Sequence record: AP017925.1
Direction: 5' to 3' (one strand)
DNA: 64,000 nucleotides
Shown: one piece after another, positions 8,547-42,216 of the stretch
How the letters are laid out: each line of letters begins with the position of its first letter
Numbering within the stretch: position 1 is the first letter of the stretch
Program-made: the position numbers and the translations under genes
The notes under the pieces: generated by a model
Told to the model about the DNA's origin: nothing
Seen by the model: the letters and a program-made list of their open reading frames with translations, nothing else
Databases searched by the model: none

Positions 8547-9506
8547 TTAATCGTTGTCGGTTCCATCCAGATGACCGTGGAAGACTGGAGCAGTAACATC
8601 ACCTTCGAATACGGCATCGCCCGTGGCACGAATCTTACCGTTAAGTACGATGTCGCCACCGGAACCATCCGCAGCACCGGTCGTCATACCCTGCGCAATC
8701 GCCAAGCTACCGCCAACGATAGCGTTGCTACCGGACTGGAAGATCTCGGTGGTAATCAGCTGCGGCGTCACGAAAGTAGCTTTCGCTGCTTTAGTAGCGT
8801 ATTCACCTTCTACAATCAAGTTGTACTTCCCTTTCACATTGGTGGTAAAGTCACCCTCAACGTTGATTAGGAGATCTTTACCATCCAGATTAATGAAGGT
8901 GCCGTCGGCATTCTTCAAAAGCATCCGTTTAGCGCCGGAGTCCCAGTGGAAGACGTTTTCGATCGTATCGAGGAACTGGAGCAGACCGTCTTTGGTGTTG
9001 ATCGAGATGTCGTAGCCGTAGGGTTCGCCATCAGCTTGCGAGGTATGGAACCGTACCTGCTTGGTATGCGTCGAGATTTCCAAGAAGTAGGTATTATCCT
9101 CTCCAGGAGTAGCGTTCTCATCCTGCGTGCCGCTGAAGCCGAAGATCACTGTTTCCAGCTTACGGAATTTCTCTTCGTACTCACATTCACTCCAGTAATA
9201 CTTGTCCGCATCTGCAAACTTCCAGATACAGACCTTTTCGCCCCGGCGTACGTCCGGTGCAGTCTTACGATTCGAGCTGAATGGTAACCACCGCGCTGTC
9301 AGCGTAGCGGACTGGTGAACCGTAGTTTCAAATGAGGCACCGTCGGCATCGGTGCCCTTGTTGTTTGTAGAGGTAAGGTTGTCGGTCAGTTCCCCGTTTG
9401 TCATGGGAAGCTGCTCCATCGGTGTTACCTGAATCTCTTTCGACGACAGCAGCTTGTTCGCCGCAACAATGCCGTACGAATACATGACAAGCTTGCTTGA
9501 TTCCAT
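8547..9506 (-). CDS. Baseplate central spike / puncturing protein (gp5/gpV-like)
   Basis: Start trimmed to MESSKLVMYSYG. N-terminal region with DADKYYW, Gly-rich beta-helix-like repeats, C-terminal FHGHLDG HxH motif; divergent from SbcC as in phiKZ. Confidence 0.6.
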   Translation of the reverse strand: MESSKLVMYSYGIVAANKLLSSKEIQVTPMEQLPMTNGELTDNLTSTNNKGTDADGASFETTVHQSATLTARWLPFSSNRKTAPDVRRGEKVCIWKFADADKYYWSECEYEEKFRKLETVIFGFSGTQDENATPGEDNTYFLEISTHTKQVRFHTSQADGEPYGYDISINTKDGLLQFLDTIENVFHWDSGAKRMLLKNADGTFINLDGKDLLINVEGDFTTNVKGKYNLIVEGEYATKAAKATFVTPQLITTEIFQSGSNAIVGGSLAIAQGMTTGAADGSGGDIVLNGKIRATGDAVFEGDVTAPVFHGHLDGTDND

Positions 9507-14161: not shown

Positions 14162-15766
14162 ATGGCTACCGCTTACCAGTATCCGTTCGATCCCAGCGGC
14201 ACTTCGTCTGCCAACCGGATCTTGAACGAGCAGCATGTCATCACCGCTGCAAACTTTCGGGATTACCACTACGTAATCCCGAACTTTGCCCCTTTCTTTG
14301 AGGGCGACTTCGACATCAAAATGCAGTTTCCTGATGGCTCGATTCGTCCTCTGACGCAAGGCGTCGACTTCTACTTCTCGAACCAGTTCTTGGACGCTTC
14401 GCGTGCCTGTGCGAAGCCTGTCTATGGTTCGATCTCGTTCCTTGACACCGATACCGCCGGTATCCTGTCGATCAACTACAACACTGTTGGTGGCGAGTGG
14501 AACATCTCGCCGACAGAAATCTCGCGTATCTTGGCCGAAGAGCTGCGCAACCCCCGTATTACGACCTGGGAACAAATCACGTATTTACCGGAACGTTTCC
14601 CGGTAGTCGATCACGCGTGGGATCTGATCGACATGGTGGGTATGTCTCCGGTTGTGGCTGCCATCGAAGCACTGCGCGACGCGGTTGTGACGAAGAACGG
14701 TGGTAACTTCACCGATCACATCAACAACTACTCGAACCCGCACAACACCACGGCGGCGCAAGTAGGGTTGGGCAATCTGTTCAACTATCCGATTGCTACG
14801 ACGGCTGATGCCCAGGCTGGCACGAGTAACTCGTTCTACATGACACCCGCGCGTGTCAAGGACGAAATCATGGCATTCGCTACGCCGCTGTCGCACTTGA
14901 CGGATTACACCAATCCGCACCAAGTGACAAAGACCCAGGTGGGGCTGAGCAATGTGGCGAACTTCGCAGTTTCGACCACGGCAGAAGCTCAAGCAGGTGC
15001 TGTTGATACGTCTTACATGACGCCGCTGAAGACAGCACAAGCCATCACGCAGCAGGCCGGTTCAGCGCTCGCAGCTCATGTTGCGAACCAGCAGAACCCG
15101 CACAACGTGACGAAAGATCAGGTTGGCTTGTTCAACGTCCAGAACTATCCGATCGCTACGCAACAGCAAGCGATGGCTGGTACGGACAACGCCTCGTACA
15201 TGACGCCGCTGCGCACAGCACAGCTGGTAGCTCAGATCTCTTCAGTGGCGCTACAGAACCACTTGAATGACTTTACCAACCCTCACCAAGTGACGGCCGG
15301 TCAGGTGGGTCTTGGTAATGTGCAGAACTACGGTATCGCTACTCAGGCTGATGCACAAGCCGGCGTGAGCAATACGCTGTACATGACGCCGGGTCGTGTC
15401 GCTGATGCCATCAATGCACTGGCTACGCCGCATGCTCACTTGCTGGATATGAACAATCCGCACCAAGTGACCGCGGCTCAAGTCGGCGCATACACGACTA
15501 CTCAGACGGATACGCTGTTGGGTGGTTACGTGCGGCTGACCGATCAGTGGGTAGCGGGTGAAACCAAAGCTGCCTTCATTGCAGAAGTGCTGCAGGGTAC
15601 GGCGAACAATGCTTCGATGGTTTACGGTTTCACGGAAGCCCAACTGGCCGCCGATCTCGAAACCAATTACTTCGATAACGCTTACGCCACCATTGCTGCA
15701 TTCAATGCATTGGCCCAGCGCGTGACCGACATCGAAACGGCCCTCAACAGCATCACCGTTGTGTAA
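14162..15766 (+). CDS. Tail fibre protein with ~60-aa NPH..QVGLGNV.NY repeats
   Basis: N-terminal YPFDPSG..N.I.NE.H motif typical of phiKZ-like fibres; four full repeats and one partial; RBS AAAGGA. Confidence 0.8.
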   Translation: MATAYQYPFDPSGTSSANRILNEQHVITAANFRDYHYVIPNFAPFFEGDFDIKMQFPDGSIRPLTQGVDFYFSNQFLDASRACAKPVYGSISFLDTDTAGILSINYNTVGGEWNISPTEISRILAEELRNPRITTWEQITYLPERFPVVDHAWDLIDMVGMSPVVAAIEALRDAVVTKNGGNFTDHINNYSNPHNTTAAQVGLGNLFNYPIATTADAQAGTSNSFYMTPARVKDEIMAFATPLSHLTDYTNPHQVTKTQVGLSNVANFAVSTTAEAQAGAVDTSYMTPLKTAQAITQQAGSALAAHVANQQNPHNVTKDQVGLFNVQNYPIATQQQAMAGTDNASYMTPLRTAQLVAQISSVALQNHLNDFTNPHQVTAGQVGLGNVQNYGIATQADAQAGVSNTLYMTPGRVADAINALATPHAHLLDMNNPHQVTAAQVGAYTTTQTDTLLGGYVRLTDQWVAGETKAAFIAEVLQGTANNASMVYGFTEAQLAADLETNYFDNAYATIAAFNALAQRVTDIETALNSITVV

Positions 15767-15818: not shown

Positions 15819-17096
15819 ATGACTATTCCGATCTATCGCTATCCCTTGGATGGCACCGGCACCAGCCCGGATAACCTGGTGGTTGGAGAAGAACACCAGC
15901 TCTCCAACCGAGCAATTCGTTGCGTAGCGCCGACCTACGGTGGCTTCTACGCTGAATCCGCAGTGGTGACGGACTTCAACACTGGCGTACCGCTGGTGCG
16001 CGGTGTTGACTACTACTTTGGTGAGCTGTTCGAGTTCCCCACTGGTCGTTACGGTAAGGAAATCTTCGGCCTGATCGTTATCACCAAGCCGAACGTTGCT
16101 GCCGTTTCGATCAATTACCAAGCACTGGGTGGTGATTACTCCTATTCCATGGACGCAATCATCGCCATGATCGACAACCTGAATCTGGACACGCGTCCGG
16201 TGGAATGGGGTGCGATCATTGGTCGTCCGGCGCTGTTCGATCCGGCAACGCACTGGCACGATGCTGGTGACATCTACGGCTTCGAATACGTAGTGAGCGC
16301 GCTGATCGATCTGCGCAACGCCATCCTGACGGGTGACGTGGCCAGCCACGATGAGATCTATCGCTACATCGATCGCTGGGCAGCTCAGCAGAGCGCGGCC
16401 ATCCAAGCAGTTTCCGATGCACTGCACACGCACATCGTCGACTACACCAATCCGCACCAAACCACGAAGGCACAGGTAGGGTTGGGACTGGTGTCGAACT
16501 TTGCGACAGCGCTGCAAGCTGACATGAATACTGGTACGGCGAACAACCTGTTCGTGACGCCAGATATCGTTGCCGCGTACGTGACTCAGCAGGCAGTGAA
16601 TCCGCTGCTTGCTCACATTGCCGACAAGGGTAACCCGCACCAGACTACCGCAGCACAAGTGGGACTGGGTAATGTCCAGAACTATGGTGTTGCTTCCCAG
16701 CCGGACATGAATGCCGGTACGCGTGACGACGTCTATCTGACGCCGCTGAAGGTCGCGACCTATGTGACAAACGTCGCGGTTAACCCGATGAATGCGCACA
16801 TTGCCAATACCAACAATCCGCATGCCGTGACACAGGCACAAGTTGGGTTGGGTAGTGTTGCGAACTATCCGGTCGCTACTCAGGCTGAAGCGCAAGCTGG
16901 AACGGCTAACAACCGCTACATGACTCCCTGGCTCGTAAACCAAGAAGTCATGCAGATGCTCAACAACGGTGCATTCGACGGTCGCTATATGCGGTATGGC
17001 ACCGCCACTGATGGTTCGACCTGGGTTAGCGCTGGTATCGCCTACGTGTTCGTATCGGGAGCATGGCGACAGTTCTGGCCGCCTGTGTGGCAGTAA
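15819..17096 (+). CDS. Tail fibre protein 2 with three NPH..QVGLG repeats and a short C-terminus
   Basis: N-terminal YPLDGTG..N...E.H motif paralogous to fibre 1; ends VSGAWRQFWPPVWQ. TTG at 15804 is an alternative start. Confidence 0.8.
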   Translation: MTIPIYRYPLDGTGTSPDNLVVGEEHQLSNRAIRCVAPTYGGFYAESAVVTDFNTGVPLVRGVDYYFGELFEFPTGRYGKEIFGLIVITKPNVAAVSINYQALGGDYSYSMDAIIAMIDNLNLDTRPVEWGAIIGRPALFDPATHWHDAGDIYGFEYVVSALIDLRNAILTGDVASHDEIYRYIDRWAAQQSAAIQAVSDALHTHIVDYTNPHQTTKAQVGLGLVSNFATALQADMNTGTANNLFVTPDIVAAYVTQQAVNPLLAHIADKGNPHQTTAAQVGLGNVQNYGVASQPDMNAGTRDDVYLTPLKVATYVTNVAVNPMNAHIANTNNPHAVTQAQVGLGSVANYPVATQAEAQAGTANNRYMTPWLVNQEVMQMLNNGAFDGRYMRYGTATDGSTWVSAGIAYVFVSGAWRQFWPPVWQ

Positions 17097-17104
17097 GAGA
17101 TGTG

Positions 17105-17143
17105 AAAACCACTCCGCCCAAAAGGTGGAGTGGTTTTTATGTC
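17105..17143 (+). terminator. Hairpin terminator after tail fibre 2
   Basis: AAAACCACTCC/GGAGTGGTTTT stem followed by TATGTC. Confidence 0.7.
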
Positions 17144-17171
17144 TGGTGTTATTTGCTAAAAGGAATTTATC

Positions 17172-17549
17172 GTGGCCACCACCTCCTCTACAACCACTGA
17201 TGTGCAAGGGTATGACATCAATACTCTCCGCAACACAATTAACAGTGTGCGGGCTCGTATTGCTGCTGGTCAACCCATCAGTGCCAACCAAATCGCTGAC
17301 CTTGCTTGGGTGTACAACACTTGGATTCAGCATACCCACAACTACTACGACTATTACTGGATCGCTTACGGTAATACGTCTCCCTATGGCACCACTGCTG
17401 TATGGAAAACTTCTGGCAACGTTGGTGTAGGGTATTTCTCACCACCTGGGGCTGGACAAACTGTTCAAGCTGCTCATGTGAATGGCTTAGCGGGTCTGGT
17501 CAATGCGATCCGATCCCATACCCACTATTCGCCGGACGGCAGTTACTAA
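17172..17549 (+). CDS. 125-aa protein with two GQ-x19-HTH-x3-D repeats (fibre-tip or precursor-like)
   Basis: GTG start after AAGGA; repeats at aa 33-60 and 95-122; Tyr/Trp-rich. Confidence 0.75.
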   Translation: MATTSSTTTDVQGYDINTLRNTINSVRARIAAGQPISANQIADLAWVYNTWIQHTHNYYDYYWIAYGNTSPYGTTAVWKTSGNVGVGYFSPPGAGQTVQAAHVNGLAGLVNAIRSHTHYSPDGSY

Positions 17550-17632
17550 ACATTCCGTTAGGTAAAAAAGCAAGTGCGTTTTTACCTATCATTCGATTTT
17601 TATAGTAATCCATTTCGAGGACGAATCCACCA

Positions 17633-17830
17633 ATGTCCAATTATCTCTCCACTGTAACAACGGCTGCGGCGCCAGCTAACACTGTGGGGCAAGGCCAAGC
17701 GGTACAACCAGCCACGATGAACCAAATGGCTGCTGTACTGGATTCATTGCTGAGCCACACGCACGTCTTTTATGACAACTACGGCAGCAACTGCAATTGT
17801 AACTGCGCCTGCACCCGAGGATCTCTGTAA
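17633..17830 (+). CDS. 65-aa candidate precursor peptide ending in CNCNCAC
   Basis: RBS GAGGA; third copy of the GQ-x19-HTH-x3-D repeat, then CxCxCxC; stop overlaps the next start (TAATG). Confidence 0.85.
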   Translation: MSNYLSTVTTAAAPANTVGQGQAVQPATMNQMAAVLDSLLSHTHVFYDNYGSNCNCNCACTRGSL

Positions 17831-18717
17831 TGAAAACTGTCTTTATCAAAAGCGGCGGCTACTACGAAACGCCAGGTGTCGCTGTCTCCGGCGCTATCAA
17901 CGACGCCTTCGACTTCAACGTGAGTCAGCATTGCCGTTCGAATGCGCTGTTCATGCTCGACTATGTCAGTCGCGAATACCGCCTCAGCCTTACCGTTGCC
18001 TCTGGTGACATGAAAGATGCGTTCGCGCGTCTCGACATGGATCTGATCACCAAGGCCGCGGAAGAGCATGGCTTCTCTTATGTCGGCCTGGTGGCTGACG
18101 AAAAGGCGATGATGGCTCGCCCGGATGAATTCCTGCGCGACTTGTCCGTCGTGACCGTCTGCAAGGAAACCGGCAAGTTCCTCGATGCCAAGTCCGGCAC
18201 CGCTCTGACCGGCAACAACATCACACCGGTGATCTACTGCGTGAAGATGGCTGACAGCACGTACGCCATGATCCTGAGCCAGATGGCCAACGTGATGCCG
18301 AGCATGGTCGACAATCCGAAGGTGGGTCGTGACGACATGAACGTCATCGTGGTCAATGACGGCGATGCCATGCGTAGTCAGTTCGTGGACGTCAGCTTCC
18401 ACGGCGCTACCAAGCATTTCCGCAACAACGACCTCGTTACTGGTTTCGCAGTGTTTGCTTGGCCGAATGCTCTGATTGAAGTTAATATCTTCAAGGACAC
18501 GCCGCTCGCCGCTGAGTTCAAGAAGAACTTCGAACTGGAAGTCGACAGCAGCTTTGATGCCAAGATCGTCGACGGCAAGGTCGTTATCCAGATGCCGCCT
18601 TCGTGTCGCACTGGCTATCTGTCGATCAAGCTGAAGACCACACCGCTGTACGAAGACGTCTCGTCGCGCGAGATCAAGGAAATGCTTTCGTTCGACTTCA
18701 TCGTGACGGTTGTTTAA
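17830..18717 (+). CDS. Uncharacterised 295-aa protein of the radical SAM cluster
   Basis: Translationally coupled to the peptide gene; no family recognised. Confidence 0.8.
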   Translation: MKTVFIKSGGYYETPGVAVSGAINDAFDFNVSQHCRSNALFMLDYVSREYRLSLTVASGDMKDAFARLDMDLITKAAEEHGFSYVGLVADEKAMMARPDEFLRDLSVVTVCKETGKFLDAKSGTALTGNNITPVIYCVKMADSTYAMILSQMANVMPSMVDNPKVGRDDMNVIVVNDGDAMRSQFVDVSFHGATKHFRNNDLVTGFAVFAWPNALIEVNIFKDTPLAAEFKKNFELEVDSSFDAKIVDGKVVIQMPPSCRTGYLSIKLKTTPLYEDVSSREIKEMLSFDFIVTVV

Positions 18718-18786
18718 CCACTCCTATTCGAAGCCGACAGATGACTTGTTCATCTGTCGGTTTTATGCTCCCATCAGGACACCATC

Positions 18787-20400
18787 ATGCAAGAACAAGT
18801 TATCAAAATCCATCGCAAGAAAGAACCCATCGACTTCAAGAAACCCGGGGAGCGTATCAAAACCATCGCCGAGGTCAAGGACATTCTGTTCGCTGAACTG
18901 AAAGTCCTGAACGTGATCCTGACCAACGCCTGCAATCTCTCGTGTAGCTACTGCTTCGAACAGCACAAACAGGACTACGGCAAGTTCACCCAAGAACAAC
19001 TGAAGCAAGTGTATGACTTCCTGCTGAACGCCAACACTCAGCCGCATCGCCACTTCCAGTTCTTTGGTGGTGAGCCGTTGGCGCAGAAGAAGAAGATCCT
19101 CGACTTCTGTCGCGACCACAAGGACGAACTCTCGGCCAACAAGGAGCAGGTGCGTGTGTCGATCGTGACCAACGCGCTGCTCCTGACACCGGAATTCATC
19201 GAGGAATACTGCAGCTACGATTTTACGTCGCTGGTCATTTCTTTGGACACGGATGATGCCGAGTCGAACCGTCGCGAACTGACGCAAGAGAACATCGACT
19301 ACATCTTCGAGATGATCAAGCTGTTGCCTGACTCGATGATGCGCGATGCTCACCACGTCTCGATTCGTTGCACCATCAACGAAGAGAGCGTACCGCACCT
19401 CGATCGCTTCATGGAGCGTCTGTATGCGTCCGGCGTGCGCAATTTCGTGATCCATCCGCTGATCCTCGCTAAGGATCAAGGCGCCATTGAATGGCAGCCG
19501 GGTATGTGGGAGCGGATGTACCATTCACTGCATCAAGCCATGCATCGCTGGGACGACTTCAAGATCACCTGGGCCGAAGGCGTGGGTGTGAAAGGCGAGT
19601 CCAACTGCATGGTCGGTTCGGACATGATTGCGATGGACGCCTCGGGTGACTTCAGCGGTTGCTACTTCCTGACCAACCTGAAAGAAACCTACGGCAACAC
19701 GATGCTCGGCAATCTGTTCCGCGACGAGATCTACATCGATCGTTACGTCGAGTTCCAGCAAGCCTATGCCAAGTCGCTGGAACACGAACAGTGCCAGTCG
19801 TGCCACCTCAAGAACTTCTGCTACCAGTGCCCGGCTGGTAATGCAGCTACTGGTGGTTCGCTGTTCCGTCCGGACTCGATGTGCAAGCGCATTGTGGAAC
19901 TGTTCCTCACTCTGCGTCAGGACTTCAACCGTAAGGCTTTGCTCCAACAGTTCAAGGAGCTGGAAGAAGCTGTTGTCCAGCAAGGTCCGATTGCTCAGTC
20001 TCGTGCAGTGCTGCATTGCATCTACCGCGAGTTCACTGGTGAGATTCAGGACAACGCCATCATTGACGCTTATGAAGAACTGCCGGCACCGCACACGCTG
20101 CTCTTCATGTTCAAGCAAATGCTGGAAGGCGGTTTGACTAGCATTCCGCCGCTCGACGTGTGGGTGTCTGGACTACTGCGCCGCAACCCTCGTCCGGAGG
20201 AAAGCATCGATCCGTACGAGTTCTACCTGTTCTTGTGCAAGCTACGTGGTATCCCGATCGATTTCAAATACACTCCGAATGGTTCTGTTCAAGAGCAGAA
20301 CTACTTTATCACCCTGACTCACTTGCTGATTTTCGATGAAAGTCGTTATCTCAGCAAATACGATCCGGAACACAGCCGGTCTCGTATTCTCGACCTGTAA
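18787..20400 (+). CDS. Radical SAM/SPASM maturase 1 with C-terminal extension
   Basis: CNLSCSYC, FFGGEP, SPASM cysteines CMVG..SGC and CQSCHLKNFCYQCP..C. Confidence 0.93.
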   Translation: MQEQVIKIHRKKEPIDFKKPGERIKTIAEVKDILFAELKVLNVILTNACNLSCSYCFEQHKQDYGKFTQEQLKQVYDFLLNANTQPHRHFQFFGGEPLAQKKKILDFCRDHKDELSANKEQVRVSIVTNALLLTPEFIEEYCSYDFTSLVISLDTDDAESNRRELTQENIDYIFEMIKLLPDSMMRDAHHVSIRCTINEESVPHLDRFMERLYASGVRNFVIHPLILAKDQGAIEWQPGMWERMYHSLHQAMHRWDDFKITWAEGVGVKGESNCMVGSDMIAMDASGDFSGCYFLTNLKETYGNTMLGNLFRDEIYIDRYVEFQQAYAKSLEHEQCQSCHLKNFCYQCPAGNAATGGSLFRPDSMCKRIVELFLTLRQDFNRKALLQQFKELEEAVVQQGPIAQSRAVLHCIYREFTGEIQDNAIIDAYEELPAPHTLLFMFKQMLEGGLTSIPPLDVWVSGLLRRNPRPEESIDPYEFYLFLCKLRGIPIDFKYTPNGSVQEQNYFITLTHLLIFDESRYLSKYDPEHSRSRILDL

Positions 20401-20413
20401 GGTAACTTAACCC

Positions 20414-21496
20414 ATGAACTACGATAACATCCAGGACGTCTCGATCTATGTGGGTCCTGCGTGCAACTTCAACTGCACGTATTGTGATCGCGCCTACGTA
20501 AACAACGTAGGTGTGGATTCTGCTGAATGCGATCCGGCCTTGGTCGACTTCGTAGTTGATGTGGTGCTGCACTCCGAGCGTCCGATGGTTTCCTTCCACG
20601 GTGGGGAACCATTTGTTTACATCAAGACCATGGAGAAGATCATCGAGGCCGTGCTCGAACGCGTACCAGATTTCAAGGAACGCGGCGCGATCTTCTTCAT
20701 CCAGACCAATGGCTCGCTGATTACCCGTCAGCGAGCTTTCTTCGAGAAATACAAAGAGGTGCTCTACGTGAGCATCTCTTACGACTTCAAGTACCAGGGC
20801 GATAACCGCACTGCGTACGACATTGACTCAACCCTGCAACTCTTGAATGATCTGGGGATTGGGACGAACCTGCAATACGTGATTCCGACCTACGACAAGA
20901 ACGCTTGCGATCACGCAGCGTACTCGGAAGTCATGCGGTTGTTCTCCAAGTTTAAGCTGGGGCAACTGAACCTGATCCTGTTGCGTCACATTCGGCAGGA
21001 AGATAAATTCGAAACAGTGATCGCGGATGAGAGCATCGACCTAAAGGGATTCTTCCTCGGCTTCATGCGCTTCGTCCAGTTGCTGTACGTCTCAGGTATC
21101 AATGTCCACATCGACGGTCATGCCAACAAGATCGATAAGAACTATTACAACAACCATAAGCAAATGGTGCTCGCTCCAAATGGCCTGATCGTACCGGAGT
21201 ACCAGTTCATCGAGTATGATGATTACGATTTCGCTATCGGTCGCTGGAAGCCTTACGTGGAGATCTCTCGTGATCAGATGCCGGAGAAGGCCGCCAAGAA
21301 GATTCGCAAAGAGTGCCAGACTTGTCCGATGGCGGACATCTGTGGTTTGCGTTATCACTACGCAATGTTCGATATGGACCCGCCAACTCCGCAACGGTGC
21401 AAGGAGTTCTACTCTCTGAACCTGATCGCGATCAAGCACCTGTACAAACTGAAAGAGCAACCCACCCTTCTCCACCATCTGGGAGTTCAGCAATGA
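20414..21496 (+). CDS. Radical SAM enzyme 2 with partial SPASM domain
   Basis: CNFNCTYC, SFHGGEP, QTNGSL; C-terminal CQTCPMADIC..C. Confidence 0.9.
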   Translation: MNYDNIQDVSIYVGPACNFNCTYCDRAYVNNVGVDSAECDPALVDFVVDVVLHSERPMVSFHGGEPFVYIKTMEKIIEAVLERVPDFKERGAIFFIQTNGSLITRQRAFFEKYKEVLYVSISYDFKYQGDNRTAYDIDSTLQLLNDLGIGTNLQYVIPTYDKNACDHAAYSEVMRLFSKFKLGQLNLILLRHIRQEDKFETVIADESIDLKGFFLGFMRFVQLLYVSGINVHIDGHANKIDKNYYNNHKQMVLAPNGLIVPEYQFIEYDDYDFAIGRWKPYVEISRDQMPEKAAKKIRKECQTCPMADICGLRYHYAMFDMDPPTPQRCKEFYSLNLIAIKHLYKLKEQPTLLHHLGVQQ

Positions 21497-22641
21497 GTCG
21501 CGCTATCACGATCGAGAATCCGAAAGAGCACTTCATCCGTTACGACGGACTGCTCAACGTCCAGTATGACGTGACGTTTTCGATCTTCAAGAAGTACACC
21601 TGTCAAGCCGGGTGCAAGATCTGTTATATCAAGGATGACTTCCTGCCTAACGAGCAGTTCAAGAAGTATGTCCCGATAGCATCACACGTCAACACGCAGA
21701 GCTACGGCGACCGCCTGCTAGAATTCCTGTCATACTTTCAGATGGCAGCAATCATCGACGACCTGTACTTTGTGCGGGAAGAACATCCGGAGCTGTACAA
21801 GTTCTATCAGGAGTATAGCGAGGCCTTCTGGCTGAGTTCCATGACGGACAACGCAGTGTTCCGTCACCTGCCGATTATTGAGGATGACCTTCGTGTCGTC
21901 GGTCTACGGGAGATCTCGCTCTCCGAGGAATTCTTGTATAAAGTCAACCAAACGAAGTTCTTTAACGCACTGGATAAAATTCAGAGGCGCGCTAAGATAT
22001 TGAAAATAAAGGTAATACTGTCGGGTCTCCCTGGCATCGCGATTCGTGGCAACGATTTGATGCTCTGGTGTCAGAACAATCAAGTGCTCCTAGAGAAGCA
22101 ATACGAGCACGGTGTTGAGCCGAATGGCCGCAGCTTCCTGTCTCAGTTGCCGAACACGCGTTACAGCGATCGCAGCCAGGAAACGCACTTCACTGAAGAG
22201 ATCACCTACAGTGAGAATTCTGGTGAGATGCTGTACCCAATTCACTCTGAGTCGATCTTCTTGCAGTACGATGACTTCTACTCGGAGCTGAAGTCTGCCA
22301 CGCGTGAAGACCGCAGTGCGCCGTTTGCCAAGCTGGATGATTTTGTCCAGAGTCCGCAAGGCTTCTTGGCTAAGGTGCTGGAAGGTAAGCTGACGGATTA
22401 CCGCAAGTATGCTTCGTGGATGCAGAACAAAGATCACGACTACTTCCGTTACTTTGACTATGTGGCGAATAACGTGGTAGTCAATCATGACTTCAACTTC
22501 ATCCCGCGTATCGCTCTGCGGCCAGATAGCGTGTACTATCACAAGCTGATGGAACACACGAAGCTGGTGGATACCCAATACGGGCTCGTGGATTCTGCCG
22601 CGAGCAAGGTCGTTCCAATTTACTCTTTCAGAGAACAATGA
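21493..22641 (+). CDS. Divergent radical SAM-like protein 3
   Basis: ATGA overlap with the previous gene; CQAGCKIC (CxxxCxxC) but no GGEP motif and no auxiliary Cys cluster. Confidence 0.7.
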   Translation: MSRAITIENPKEHFIRYDGLLNVQYDVTFSIFKKYTCQAGCKICYIKDDFLPNEQFKKYVPIASHVNTQSYGDRLLEFLSYFQMAAIIDDLYFVREEHPELYKFYQEYSEAFWLSSMTDNAVFRHLPIIEDDLRVVGLREISLSEEFLYKVNQTKFFNALDKIQRRAKILKIKVILSGLPGIAIRGNDLMLWCQNNQVLLEKQYEHGVEPNGRSFLSQLPNTRYSDRSQETHFTEEITYSENSGEMLYPIHSESIFLQYDDFYSELKSATREDRSAPFAKLDDFVQSPQGFLAKVLEGKLTDYRKYASWMQNKDHDYFRYFDYVANNVVVNHDFNFIPRIALRPDSVYYHKLMEHTKLVDTQYGLVDSAASKVVPIYSFREQ

Positions 22642-23897
22642 GCATAAGCACATTCCGAATCGAGAAGTCGGGTGAAGTGTTTGGTTACGACAACACACTG
22701 AACTCGATCCTCGATGCAAACAACCAGCCTGTGGGTCGAGCTTCGTCTCTCCTGGCTCAGGCTCCGTCGTTCGAGAAATCGAATACTCCTACCACCATCA
22801 AGGTACTGCTCGGGCACGCCTGTAACTACAGCTGCAGCTACTGCGTACAGAAGGACATCGGTAATCCGGCTGAACGTCCGAAGAACATCATGACCAAGGA
22901 GTTGATCAAGAAGATGCGCGCGCATCTCGATCTCTCCAACGTCACGCGGATTGAACTGTGGGGCGGCGAGACGCTGCTCTACTGGCCGGATATCGTTGAG
23001 ATCATCTCAGCACTGGATCGGGAAGGCATTACGTGGTACATCCCGACCAACGGTACGATCCTGCGGATGAAGCACGCTGAGTTCTTCCGCCAGATGAAAG
23101 GCGAGATGACCATCGGCATCAGTCACGACGGTCCGGGTCACGTATCGCTGCGTGGTCCGGAGTTCCTGCATCGCAAGATCGATGAGTTGGGTGCGCTGCA
23201 AGACGCCAAGGTACGGTTCAGCTTCAACGCTGTGATCAGTACCACGAACTACGATCTGTTTGCCATCGATGACTACTTCCGCTTCTTCCTGCTCAAGGCA
23301 GACCTCGATCACGTAGGGCTGGGCTTCGAGCTGGGGCGGACGTATGAGACGGGTGCTTGCGCTACCGAGTCGCACGTGATCACACTGGAGCAGATCCCGC
23401 ACTATCGGTCGATTCTGAAAGCGTATCTCAAGCACCATCTCGATGCGTTCAAGAAAGGTCAAGCGCCGGAAGACATCGATGCCGATACTCGACTGTTCAA
23501 CAGCCTGTTCCATTTCAGCAATGGTGTGATTCCGTACGCGAAGTCGCTAGTTCAGCAAAGCCCCATTCGCTATTACAGCAACTGCGGCACTGATGATCCG
23601 AACCTGATCACGCTGGACATGAATGGCGCTATCCGCGTTTGTCAGAACACGGACGAGAGCTACATCTACGGCAACGTTGCTAATATCGGCGCTGCTAAGA
23701 TGCAGAAGGTCGATTACAGCAAGAACGACTTCTGCAAGGACTGCTCGGTTTTGCGGCTGTGCAATCGTAGCTGCCCGATCGAACTGCCATACGAAACCTT
23801 TTTGACCAACCACCATATCGAGAACGCTCACTACAGCGAGATACAACTCTCGGCGTTTGAGTTGTTGTTCGATAGCCCTATCACCAAAGTGAACTGA
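22638..23897 (+). CDS. Radical SAM/SPASM maturase 4
   Basis: CNYSCSYC, LWGGET, PTNGT; SPASM-like CGTD..RVC and CKDCSVLRLCNRSCP; ATGA overlap. Confidence 0.92.
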   Translation: MSISTFRIEKSGEVFGYDNTLNSILDANNQPVGRASSLLAQAPSFEKSNTPTTIKVLLGHACNYSCSYCVQKDIGNPAERPKNIMTKELIKKMRAHLDLSNVTRIELWGGETLLYWPDIVEIISALDREGITWYIPTNGTILRMKHAEFFRQMKGEMTIGISHDGPGHVSLRGPEFLHRKIDELGALQDAKVRFSFNAVISTTNYDLFAIDDYFRFFLLKADLDHVGLGFELGRTYETGACATESHVITLEQIPHYRSILKAYLKHHLDAFKKGQAPEDIDADTRLFNSLFHFSNGVIPYAKSLVQQSPIRYYSNCGTDDPNLITLDMNGAIRVCQNTDESYIYGNVANIGAAKMQKVDYSKNDFCKDCSVLRLCNRSCPIELPYETFLTNHHIENAHYSEIQLSAFELLFDSPITKVN

Positions 23898-23905
23898 GAA
23901 AACTC

Positions 23906-24742
23906 ATGTCCGACATTCTTGACCGTTTTGTCCTGCCCGAAACTGCAGCCCAAGTTACCGAGCTGCGCGCCCAGCTGGACGCGATGAAGAACCATCGTGT
24001 CTTCGGTATGGTGAAAACCATCGACGACCTGCAAACCTTCATGTCGCTCCACGTCTACGCCGTGTGGGACTTCATGACGCTGGCCAAGCGCCTGCAGTGC
24101 GAGTACACCGGCATCAAGTTCCCGTGGGTGCCGCCGCGCCTCCCCAAGGTCGCCCGTCTGATCAACGAGATCATCCTGGCCGAAGAGTCCGACGACAACG
24201 GTGAGGGCGGTACTTGCAGCCACTTCGAACTGTACGCCATGGCCATGCAAGAAATCGGTGACATCGACATGGAGTCGCTCGAAGCATTCGTAACGAACCT
24301 TCGTTACGGTATCCCGCCGGTGGAATCTGCTAACCGTGCACTGATCAAGGCCGATCCGGAGTTCCGTGCGACTGTCACCAACTACATCGGCGATACTACT
24401 GCCGTGGCTCGCACTGGCCTGCCGGAAGAAGTGCTGGCCTACTTCGTCTTTGGTCGTGAAGATTCGATCCCGGCGATGTTCAGCAACCTGCTTGAGCAGA
24501 TGGGTGATCTGGCTGCCAAAGCGACGACCTTCACGTACTACTTGAAGCGCCATATCCAACTCGACGGTGAAGACCACAGTGTCAAAGCTGCTGAGATGCT
24601 GTCGCTCGAACTGGAAGGCAATCCGATTCGCACGCGCACCGCACTGATCGCTGGTATCAATGCCGCCAAGTCCCGCATTGCTTTGTGGGATGCGATTGCT
24701 GCGAAGCTGGAAGCAACTCAAGCAGCGACGGCAACTGCCTAA
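23906..24742 (+). CDS. DUF3050-family heme-oxygenase-like (PqqC/CADD-fold) diiron oxidase
   Basis: Motifs HVYAVWDFM, PWVPP, INEIILAEESD, SHFELY, FGRED, YLKRHIQLDGEDH. Confidence 0.85.
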   Translation: MSDILDRFVLPETAAQVTELRAQLDAMKNHRVFGMVKTIDDLQTFMSLHVYAVWDFMTLAKRLQCEYTGIKFPWVPPRLPKVARLINEIILAEESDDNGEGGTCSHFELYAMAMQEIGDIDMESLEAFVTNLRYGIPPVESANRALIKADPEFRATVTNYIGDTTAVARTGLPEEVLAYFVFGREDSIPAMFSNLLEQMGDLAAKATTFTYYLKRHIQLDGEDHSVKAAEMLSLELEGNPIRTRTALIAGINAAKSRIALWDAIAAKLEATQAATATA

Positions 24743-24754
24743 TCGACTCACGAC

Positions 24755-24800
24755 GGCATAAAGGAGAGTAGAGGCCAGACGGCCTCTACTCTTTATGTCG
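24755..24800. terminator. Bidirectional terminator closing the radical SAM operon
   Basis: GGCATAAAG..AGAGTAGAGGCC-AGAC-GGCCTCTACTCT..TTATGTCG. Confidence 0.85.
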
Positions 24801-39980: not shown

Positions 39981-40056
39981 GTGCCTCTCGGCCGGAACCC
40001 CTTAACCATTAGGCTCCGAACTCATTGAAGCCATCAGGGCTAGTGTTCCCGATCCT

Positions 40057-42216
40057 TCACGGAGTCGTGGTGGTGTTCAGCGAACCAGTAACCACAACCG
40101 GCACGCGGCTGTCGACGGTCGACGGAATACCAGTCACGGTGATCTCCAGCAGGATCGGCAGGTTGGTGATGTGGCGGAACGCCGGCTGAACGGTCAGTTC
40201 CTTGCTGTTCGCACCGTTACGGTGGATCGGCAGTACCACGGTCACTTCCGGCTTCCATGCCATGTTACCGAAGTGCAGCGGGTGCGGAATGCCGTCGGCA
40301 GCGCCCTTCACACCGAAGGTGATGAAGATCTTGCCGTGCATGCGCTCGTTCTGCGTGTCCACGATCATGACGTCTTCGAAGCCGCCACCGATGGTACGCA
40401 GATCGCCAGCAACCTGCAGGTAACGAGCCAGGGTCTGGTCGGTGCCGATGATCACGACCGGCTTGGCGCTTTCGCCACCAGCCAGCATGTCAGCCGCAGC
40501 CTTGTAGCCCGAGAGCTGGTAGGCACGGAAGACCATGTCACGGATCACGTTGATCAGGGTAGCCTGGATGTTGGCAGCCAGTTCAGCGCTGTTGCGGGTC
40601 TGCACGGTCGAGTCGACCTTGATTTCCTGCTCTTCGTAGAAGGCAGTGATCAGGTGGCGAGCGATACCCAGCACCATCAGGTTGTCGCCCAGCGGACGAC
40701 GGCCTTCTTGCACCAGAGCCTTCAGGGTGTCGGCAGCATCGAACAGCTCGTCCACGGCCTTGCCCGATGCCATCGCACGGGTCAGGGTCACCAGGGAAGC
40801 CAGATCGCTGGCATCGGTCGTGTCGTTCAGGCCTTGCGGGCGCTTCACGGTGAACGGCGACAGCAGCGGCACGGCGTAAGCCTGCACGTCCTGACGAGTT
40901 TCCAGCATCTGGCCGATCGAGCGACGGTTCAGGTTGGTACGACGAGCGTCCAGGCGATAGCCGATCACTTGCGCGTCGTTGAACAGAGCCACGATGGCGG
41001 CGTAAGCCGGCGAGGACGGCAGAGCAACGTCGCCGTTCTGGTCGATGATCTTGTCGATGCGCACAGCGGAAGCGTTCAGCTCGGTGTCACCCTTGTCGCG
41101 AACGACGGAGCCGGTAACGGTGGTCTTGATGTACACGACCAGGTTGCCGTCAACCACGGGCTTCAGGGTATCCAGAGCAGCGCCAGCCACGTTCAGAGTG
41201 GTCGGACCCACGCTCAGAGCAGCGGTTTCCAGACGCACGTCCATGCGCTGCTGGTCACCCTGAACCGGGTAGTGGAACTGAGCACCCGGCAGGTGGGTCG
41301 TCGGGAATTCCAGCACGTCGTTGCCGACCTTGATCACGACGGACTTCAACAGGATGTCCGTGTCGATCGAATCGGTTTCGTCCATGTGACCCTGGTCCAG
41401 CTGCAGATCGGTCTGCGACAGGTCGATCAGGTCGAACACCTTGCCGATGGCCAGCGGTGCGGTCTGCACTTGTTCGCCGTTCACGTCGGTCGTGATCGGA
41501 GCGACCAGAGCGGTGTCAACGAAGAACTGCTTGTAGCCGTCGCGGTACACCGGAGCGATCTTGGTCGAGGTGCTGTTGATCAGGCCCGGATTACGGATCA
41601 CGTTGACGATGTTGTGGCGGTTCCAGTTGTCCAGTTCGCCGGTGGCCTTACGGCGCACGCCGTTGATCAGGTTCACCAGGTTCAGGTGGATGTGGTAGCC
41701 TTGCTGGTCGGGAGCCACGACCACGGTCGGGTAGAAGGCTTCGCCGAACGCGTCTTGGCGAGCAGCTTGCAGGTTGTACGCCACGGTGTACACGGCAGCG
41801 GCGCGGTTTTCCTTCTCGTCGTACGATTCCAGCGCCGGAGCGATACGATCGATACCACCGGTAGCGGCCATCGCACCCGGGACGTTGGACATGTTGCTGT
41901 TGCGCAGGAACGCACCGATATCGCCGGTGATGGCGCCAGCCATCACAGCAGCTTCGCGTTGAGCCGAGGTCAGGTCGGCTTCGAGGCCGGCGACGACGTT
42001 GGTCAGGCTGTCGATGGACATTTGCAGATCGGAAGCGGCGACGGCATCGTCAGCGAACGATTCCAGGCCCAGAGCCAGGCCAGCGCCCTTGGCGGAAACC
42101 AGGGAGTCACGGCCGGACAGACGCATGTTGGAGGCAACGGCCTCGATGGTAGCTTCCAGTTGGGTCGATGCACCGCTGCCATTCTTGGCAGCAAACAGCT
42201 TTTTGAGTTGAGACAT
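40057..42216 (-). CDS. Major capsid protein (phiKZ gp120-like)
   Basis: 719 aa; extreme codon bias; GLES/ALESYD protease-type sites; YNLQAARQDAFGEAFYPTVVV and LHFGNMAWKPE motifs. Confidence 0.9.
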   Translation of the reverse strand: MSQLKKLFAAKNGSGASTQLEATIEAVASNMRLSGRDSLVSAKGAGLALGLESFADDAVAASDLQMSIDSLTNVVAGLEADLTSAQREAAVMAGAITGDIGAFLRNSNMSNVPGAMAATGGIDRIAPALESYDEKENRAAAVYTVAYNLQAARQDAFGEAFYPTVVVAPDQQGYHIHLNLVNLINGVRRKATGELDNWNRHNIVNVIRNPGLINSTSTKIAPVYRDGYKQFFVDTALVAPITTDVNGEQVQTAPLAIGKVFDLIDLSQTDLQLDQGHMDETDSIDTDILLKSVVIKVGNDVLEFPTTHLPGAQFHYPVQGDQQRMDVRLETAALSVGPTTLNVAGAALDTLKPVVDGNLVVYIKTTVTGSVVRDKGDTELNASAVRIDKIIDQNGDVALPSSPAYAAIVALFNDAQVIGYRLDARRTNLNRRSIGQMLETRQDVQAYAVPLLSPFTVKRPQGLNDTTDASDLASLVTLTRAMASGKAVDELFDAADTLKALVQEGRRPLGDNLMVLGIARHLITAFYEEQEIKVDSTVQTRNSAELAANIQATLINVIRDMVFRAYQLSGYKAAADMLAGGESAKPVVIIGTDQTLARYLQVAGDLRTIGGGFEDVMIVDTQNERMHGKIFITFGVKGAADGIPHPLHFGNMAWKPEVTVVLPIHRNGANSKELTVQPAFRHITNLPILLEITVTGIPSTVDSRVPVVVTGSLNTTTTP

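Follow-up and report, generated by a model that had tools for sequence, protein, structure and literature searches.

Why would a jumbo phage of Ralstonia carry, next to its tail-fibre genes, a set of iron-sulfur enzymes together with a very small, cysteine-rich protein? The window analyzed here is a 64,000-nucleotide stretch (record AP017925.1) of Ralstonia phage RP12 (100% identity). A first-pass annotation of its sequence described eight co-oriented genes between two terminators, encoding an HTH-repeat protein, a 65-aa Cys-repeat peptide, a 295-aa protein, four radical SAM proteins and a diiron oxidase, and it proposed that the phage encodes its own post-translational pathway. The observation was confirmed, with three corrections given below, whereas the interpretation was only partly supported. 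The features of the locus are as follows, where R1 to R4 denote the four CxxxCxxC proteins and P the small Cys-repeat protein.

14162-15766, plus strand: ORF072, a fibre-like virion protein upstream of the module, with repeated NPH..T..QVGL units; annotated as a virion structural protein/YomR
15819-17096, plus strand: ORF073, a fibre-like virion protein with the same repeats and a C-terminal W-R-Q..P..W motif; tblastn hits tail-fibre genes of many jumbo phages
17099-17143, plus strand: intrinsic terminator in front of the module, a 20-pair stem followed by a T run (-32.8 kcal/mol, z -7.9)
17172-17549, plus strand: ORF074, 125 aa, with two helix+HxHxxxD modules (His-x-His-xxx-Asp at 17331-17351 and 17517-17537)
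17561-17588, plus strand: AT-rich hairpin followed by a T run, between ORF074 and the P gene, with weak support (fold z-score -2.5)
17633-17830, plus strand: the 65-aa gene P, not annotated in the RP12 records, with a variable N-terminus, a third HxHxxxD module (17756-17776), the Cys-x repeat tail NCNCNCAC (17789-17812) and a C-terminal TRGSL
17830-18717, plus strand: ORF075, 295 aa, a core partner without a recognized fold, whose start overlaps the stop of P
18787-20400, plus strand: ORF076 (R1), radical SAM/SPASM enzyme, CxxxCxxC at 18931-18954
20414-21496, plus strand: ORF077 (R2), radical SAM enzyme with a four-Cys C-terminal motif, CxxxCxxC at 20462-20485
21493-22641, plus strand: ORF078 (R3), CxxxCxxC protein of unconfirmed family, motif at 21601-21624
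22638-23897, plus strand: ORF079 (R4), radical SAM/SPASM enzyme, CxxxCxxC at 22821-22844
23906-24742, plus strand: ORF080, HamA/MgoB/PvfA-family heme-oxygenase-like iron enzyme
about 24763-24795: hairpin terminator between convergent ORF080 and ORF081 (-31.4 kcal/mol, z -5.9)

The gene overlaps described in the first-pass annotation are present, as TAATG at 17828-17832 and ATGA at 21493-21496 and 22638-22641. The unannotated P gene is real, because more than 50 orthologues conserve its last 40 or so residues. Orthologues of P were found in every related locus, and 99 of 126 proteins positive for the P profile shared its architecture.

The CxxxCxxC motif was present in all four enzymes and was invariant in 39-42 unique homologues of each family at 23-40% identity. 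R1, R2 and R4 scored 71.8, 43.1 and 41.9 bits, respectively, against Pfam Radical_SAM (PF04055; cut-off 29.5), and the GGE SAM-binding motif was invariant in all three. The C-terminal cysteines fit the earlier description of two full SPASM proteins, one partial and one degenerate: seven are invariant in R1 (42 sequences), six in R4 (39 sequences), four in R2 (C301, C304, C310 and C329; 40 sequences) and none in R3. However, the seven-Cys pattern for two auxiliary clusters was complete in R1 only, and the Pfam SPASM model scored only 16.6 bits on R1 against a cut-off of 21.5. R3, whose motif was invariant in 39 sequences, matched no Pfam, NCBIfam or PDB entry and lacks both the GGE motif and auxiliary cysteines. 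Its only link to the superfamily was a borderline profile-profile match to R1 (54%, E 1.3e-4), and a single-sequence AF2 model was unusable (pLDDT 31). The count of four radical SAM enzymes is thus three confirmed members plus one candidate.

ORF080 is a clear member of PF11251 (230.8 bits against a cut-off of 22.2; E 2.7e-50 to PDB 9VWB), and the positions aligned to the iron/2OG-site residues H40, E84/85, H96, R167, E168, H199, D203, H207 and R240 of HamA were kept in 26-28 of 28 phage copies. The designation of ORF080 as a diiron enzyme is not established, since its closest solved relative, HamA, was crystallized with one iron. Known members of this family work with an NRPS carrier domain and an N-oxygenase on tethered valine (PMC12522199). 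Neither partner was present in the module or in its relatives; instead the enzyme is linked to a ribosomal peptide and radical SAM enzymes.

The third correction concerns the HTH repeat of ORF074, which consists of two copies of a roughly 35-residue helix+HxHxxxD module, with a third copy in P. Residues H54, H56, D60, H116, H118 and D122 of ORF074 were invariant in 14 sequences down to 23% identity, and all 45 ORF074-like proteins in IMG/VR loci had exactly two such modules. A first HMM comparison of the modules, which used only 11 peptides, was weak, but profile-profile comparison of larger sets showed the three modules to be related (92-96% probability, E 4e-9 to 1e-7). The window holds exactly three modules. 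Proteins that fuse ORF074-like modules to P also exist, namely one protein (P0046) with three modules plus a Cys tail and about ten two-module forms, giving proteins of 110-230 aa. ORF074 itself matched nothing in Pfam, NCBIfam or PDB. For ORF075, a good AF2 model (pLDDT 86) matched no PDB fold (TM at most about 0.2-0.3 for the whole chain) and only beta-sandwich/Ig-like pieces matched, so that neither an RRE protein nor a protease is supported.

Is the module peculiar to RP12? Single-protein scans of IMG/VR with ORF075 and ORF078 returned only RP12 itself, whereas a profile built from an alignment of P found 46 more viral loci, and ORF075 homologues led to 8 syntenic metagenome loci. P, the ORF074-like and ORF075-like proteins and all four enzyme families occurred together in 37 of the 46 IMG/VR loci, and seven of the nine others are cut by contig ends. 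The same set was present in all 9 RP12-like loci. This co-occurrence strongly supports the core inference of the first-pass annotation. Co-occurrence and collinearity held across about 55 loci: R1-R2-R3-R4 were always collinear, and the ORF075 family, present in 45 of 46 IMG/VR loci, was always adjacent to the P gene. The oxygenase, in contrast, was absent from 22 of 46 IMG/VR loci and 2 of 9 RP12-like loci. Among isolated phages, tblastn found the module only in RP12 and RP31. Scans of 185,579 species genomes of bacteria and archaea, using one pattern set from P and one from R3, found nothing.

The tail-fibre setting also holds in other phage lineages, as neighbouring genes hit tail-fibre PHROGs in 6 of 6 sampled loci from different gene orders. 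In the RP12-like lineage, the ORF074-like protein carries variable added domains (Pfam Gly_rich_2 at 49.7 bits, and a domain shared with fibre-like proteins, phrog_38759) and is duplicated once. The phage RSL2 has a different radical SAM cluster with a Cys-tailed protein at the same post-fibre position.

What does the module do? We favor, tentatively, a phage-specific post-translational maturation module in which P pairs with ORF074, and the three His-x-His motifs may together form a metal-binding bundle. In this view, R1 and R4, R2 with one auxiliary-cluster motif, and the divergent R3 would modify the (Cys-x)n tail of P, most likely by carbon-sulfur (thioether-type) cross-links from the Cys residues, and the optional HamA-like enzyme would add an oxidation. 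The product, together with ORF075, would serve the neighbouring tail-fibre apparatus as a rigid cross-linked small subunit or tip rather than leave as a free peptide. The gene content, motifs, strict co-occurrence, shared module, fusions, fibre neighbourhood and virus-only distribution come directly from the sequence comparisons, but that P is the substrate, the type of bond, the metal site and the location in the virion are inferences. Several findings temper this model. A strong terminator separates the module from the fibre genes, and in most lineages the ORF074-like protein is a compact 120-135 aa protein without a variable domain. The RP31 virion proteome lists none of ORF68-76, although this argues only weakly because it also misses both adjacent fibre proteins and nearly everything under 12 kDa. 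The motifs are reminiscent of the His-x-His metal sites at the tips of T4-type fibres (gp37/gp12), but a profile of 14 ORF074-like proteins searched against all PDB sequences returned no fibre protein (best E 0.4, unrelated).

The enzymes most closely related to R1 and R2 are peptide maturases. Both scored best against the PapB-family and ranthipeptide/SCIFF thioether maturases, which are full-SPASM radical SAM enzymes next to a short Cys-rich substrate gene, and the closest solved relative of R1 is CteB (PDB 5WGG, E 2.5e-18). However, no equivalog-level match was found: the best, to PapB (NF047865), reached 125 bits against a cut-off of 340, and all others were lower. Unlike those systems, R1 has no N-terminal RRE domain, four enzyme families are used instead of one, the proposed substrate carries an HxHxxxD module shared with a partner protein, and the system was found only in phages, in a tail-fibre setting. 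The QhpD-QhpC system of quinohemoprotein amine dehydrogenase small-subunit maturation, in which a SPASM enzyme cross-links Cys residues of a small protein that remains a subunit of a larger complex and an oxygenase acts afterwards, matches the proposed mechanism by analogy. TIGR03906 was among the top hits, but at 73.8 bits against a cut-off of 453 it does not indicate membership, and no dehydrogenase subunits or leader protease are present.

Peptide plus SPASM enzymes fits a free RiPP equally well, and whether the product is a fibre component or a free effector is not resolved, although the evidence leans towards the fibre. In the free-RiPP reading, which we consider less likely, the modified C-terminal part of P would be released with help from host proteases and lysis and act as an antibacterial, signalling, metal-scavenging or host-takeover peptide, with ORF074 and ORF075 as recognition or chaperone partners. 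The layout is the classic one, P has a variable N-terminus and a conserved C-terminus, and a few loci carry accessory ketosynthase or desaturase genes, which hints at natural-product tailoring. The module is nevertheless not a textbook RiPP cluster. No RRE domain, leader protease, exporter or immunity gene was found in the core; no PqqD/RRE family hit appeared in any of the eight proteins at E<=0.1, R1, R2 and R4 begin 10-60 residues before the cluster motif, and the ORF075 model showed no such match. The fibre neighbourhood, the fusions, the fibre-type domains acquired by ORF074-like proteins and the absence of copies from the cellular genomes searched, where RiPP clusters normally live, also argue against a free peptide.

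It is doubtful that P is not the substrate but forms, with ORF074, a metal or Fe-S carrier or scaffold while the enzymes act on a small molecule, lipid, surface glycan or nucleotide. His, Asp, Tyr and Cys are all metal ligands, R3 lacks radical SAM hallmarks beyond its Cys triad, and HamA-family enzymes normally act on carrier-bound amino acids. However, SPASM-type auxiliary clusters are typical of peptide and protein modifiers, the closest families and structure are peptide maturases, and the number of Cys-x repeats varies from 3 to 7 while the enzymes stay constant, as expected for a repeat substrate. Nucleotide or DNA modification in particular is unlikely, as the enzymes are SPASM-type and strictly linked to the peptide, and no nucleotide- or sugar-handling domain is in the core. 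Least likely is a peptide-derived redox cofactor following PQQ or mycofactocin logic, the analogy drawn in the first-pass annotation. A peptide, a SPASM enzyme and a heme-oxygenase-fold enzyme do occur together, and an Asp and an aromatic residue are invariant next to the Cys tail. The analogy is not supported, since ORF080 belongs to PF11251 rather than PqqC, no PqqB, PqqD, PqqE or mycofactocin equivalog passed its cut-off, the conserved residues differ, the oxygenase is dispensable and no cofactor-using dehydrogenase is linked to the module.

Radical SAM/SPASM maturation of Cys-rich peptides is known in bacteria, but we found no paper describing a conserved, virus-only version in the literature we could search. 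This version has four collinear enzyme families, a previously unannotated putative substrate gene, a partner that shares the motif of the substrate, and a fixed place among tail-fibre genes. The most far-reaching possibility is that phage-encoded radical SAM enzymes covalently cross-link a heteromeric, metal-binding tail-fibre tip built from ORF074, P and ORF075, which would be the first radical-SAM-dependent maturation of a virus structural protein and would define a new phage-only system with four dedicated Fe-S enzyme families. As the only cultured phages that carry the module, RP12 and RP31 are the natural material for its study. If the product is part of the virion, it adds enzyme-made covalent cross-links to the ways phages build adsorption organelles; if it is a free peptide, it is a new RiPP class made by lytic phages. 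Either way, the module supplies new radical SAM families, including the candidate R3, which has a cluster motif but no recognizable SAM-binding motif, and assigns a role to seven to eight hypothetical genes in about fifty phage genomes.

The region 17100-24800 was characterized by sequence comparison and is 100% identical to Ralstonia phages RP12 and RP31, which are phiKZ-related jumbo phages. RefSeq annotates ORF074-080 in this region but not the gene for the 65-aa peptide. The list of open reading frames, their translations and inspection of the sequence confirmed eight co-oriented genes, which overlap as TAATG at the peptide/ORF075 junction and as ATGA at the ORF077/078 and ORF078/079 junctions. 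The cluster described in the first-pass annotation is real. The hairpins detected in and around the gene set were:

17099-17143, hairpin bracketing the set on the ORF074 side, folding at -32.8 kcal/mol (z -7.9)
17561-17588, AT-rich hairpin with a T run between ORF074 and the peptide gene (z -2.5), which may attenuate transcription into the enzyme genes
about 24763-24795, hairpin bracketing the set on the ORF080 side, folding at -31.4 kcal/mol (z -5.9)

The genes upstream of the set, ORF072 and ORF073, encode fibre-like repeat proteins. Elsewhere in the window, the GC content rises to 0.615 at 40001-42000 against about 0.52 in the rest, and by record coordinates this segment is the major head protein gene (ORF094). 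The genome paper of 2017 named ORF76, 77, 79 and 80 individually (radical SAM, Fe-S oxidoreductase, MoaA-like, and MgoB) but gave no system-level reading. The RP31 virion proteome in that paper lists none of ORF68-76, although it also misses both fibre-like neighbors.

ORF076, ORF077 and ORF079 passed the Pfam Radical_SAM profile. Their best NCBIfam scores were to peptide maturases, with the PapB family first for ORF076 and ORF077, but all were far below the equivalog cut-offs. The nearest solved structure to ORF076 and ORF077 is 5WGG. In contrast, ORF078 has the Cys triad but no family match. ORF080 is a clear member of PF11251 and is about half identical to HamA (PDB 9VWB, E 2.7e-50), which a 2025 study describes as a heme-oxygenase-fold enzyme that crystallised with one iron, binds 2-oxoglutarate and oxidises carrier-tethered valine. 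ORF074, the peptide and ORF075 matched no curated family.

Homologues of ORF075 (36-50% identity) led to eight syntenic loci in RP12-like metagenome contigs. Each has the order fibre-fibre-A-peptide-ORF075-R1-R2-R3-R4, where A is the ORF074-like gene and R1 to R4 are the families of ORF076 to ORF079, and the oxygenase is present in 7 of 9 loci when RP12 is counted. In three of these loci the peptide gene had not been called, but it is present. A profile of five peptides found 68 representative clusters among 1.84 billion proteins, and an alignment of 39 of these peptides found 46 further IMG/VR loci, on contigs of up to 379 kb, which we mapped with HMMs built from the RP12-like set. Thirty-seven of the 46 loci hold all four enzyme families, always in the order R1-R2-R3-R4, and seven of the other nine end at a contig edge. 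Two copies are truly different: locus L062 has only one enzyme, which is R4-like, together with two peptide-like genes, and locus L028 is rearranged, with a 758-aa R1-like gene and three ORF075-like genes on the other strand. The ORF075 family is in 45 of 46 loci and always sits next to the peptide gene, an ORF074-like protein accompanies nearly all loci, and the oxygenase is in 24 of 46 loci.

The motifs of the enzymes hold over about 40 unique sequences per family, down to 23-37% identity to RP12. CxxxCxxC is invariant in all four families; R1 keeps seven SPASM Cys, R4 keeps six and R2 keeps four; and GGE is invariant in R1, R2 and R4. R3 keeps only the triad, and a deep-profile comparison gave a borderline link between R3 and R1. 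The oxygenase keeps its metal and Arg positions in 26-28 of 28 copies.

The candidate substrates share a common C-terminal architecture, which was found in 99 of 126 unique profile-positive proteins. An HxHxxxD motif comes first, followed by an aromatic residue two positions later and then by a run of 3-7 Cys separated by single residues, which are Asn 156 times, Gln 97, Ala 46, Glu 27 and Asp 16. Ninety-two of the 99 then finish with Arg-Gly plus one or two residues, whereas the N-terminal 25-35 residues vary. Every one of the 45 ORF074-like proteins in IMG/VR loci has exactly two HxHxxx[D/E] motifs about 65 residues apart, each preceded by a helix-like stretch. Profile-profile comparison of the three 35-column modules, two from A and one from the peptide, gave 92-96% probability, with E from 4e-9 to 1e-7, and columns that were not used for anchoring are shared at about 65-95%. 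The whole 64-kb window has only these three modules. Some proteins fuse A-type modules to the peptide; one has three modules plus a Cys tail (230 aa), and about ten have two modules plus a tail. Such fusions argue that A and the peptide act as one unit.

The flanking genes in six sampled loci from different gene orders hit tail-fibre, tail or virion-structural PHROGs. In the RP12-like lineage, A follows directly after a fibre gene that ends in a shared W-[RK]-Q..P motif, and there A gains variable domains, namely Pfam Gly_rich_2, a domain shared with fibre-like proteins and a weak ILEI hit, and is duplicated once. In locus L010 (6135-7508) the ORF074-like gene is tandemly duplicated and the two copies have different middle regions. 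In locus L037 (7122-8282 and 15828-17442) the ORF074-like protein carries a Pfam Gly_rich_2 insert between its two modules and two HamA-like genes lie in tandem. In loci L029/L030 (8620-9978) the 452-aa ORF074-like protein has a weak Hint-module match (residues 270-310, below cut-off) in its C-terminal extension. A GIY-YIG homing-endonuclease gene (locus L006, 8957-9913, minus strand) is inserted between the peptide gene (8667-8876) and the ORF075 homologue. In locus L034 (5421-8942), and also in L052, L022 and L042, a beta-ketoacyl synthase, a fatty-acid desaturase and three unknown genes lie between the ORF074-like and ORF075-like genes; the ketosynthase is in 2 loci and the desaturase in 4, and they may be lipid-type tailoring genes.

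The related Ralstonia phage RSL2 (locus L017, NC_028950, 8180-14714) has a non-orthologous cluster directly after the two fibre genes, the same post-fibre position. This cluster holds a cupin/JmjC-like protein, two radical SAM enzymes, three unknown proteins and a 186-aa protein, the last 16 residues of which hold three spaced Cys followed by Ser-Arg-Gly, and it may be an independent analogue of the RP12 module. Ralstonia phage FLC4-3B (locus L016, 8101-12530) has fibre genes 62% identical to ORF073, but no radical SAM module follows them, making it a natural comparator without the module. Scans of one genome for each of 185,579 bacterial and archaeal species, using one peptide pattern and two R3 patterns, found no copy.

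It is well supported that the gene set is a radical-SAM-based maturation system whose substrate is the Cys-repeat protein, although this conclusion still rests on gene linkage and family resemblance. Whereas the gene order, the conserved motifs and the shared modules were observed in the sequences, the thioether chemistry, the His6 metal site and the virion location are all inferences. The comparison with His-x-His fibre tips is by analogy, and a profile search of PDB did not confirm it. The interpretation in the first-pass annotation, a phage-encoded post-translational pathway that matures a tail-fibre tip or makes a peptide-derived effector or cofactor, was supported only in part; its analogy to PQQ biosynthesis failed the family tests.

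We tentatively favor a fibre-associated, cross-linked small subunit over a free RiPP, which we consider the less likely of the two. The fixed tail-fibre setting, the two-plus-one module arrangement and the fusions, the fibre-type domains that A acquires, the lack of an RRE domain, protease or exporter, and the absence of the module from the cellular genomes scanned all led to this view. SPASM peptide and protein maturation is already known, but our literature search found no paper on this system, which we regard as a previously undescribed form of such maturation and possibly as a new kind of virion maturation.
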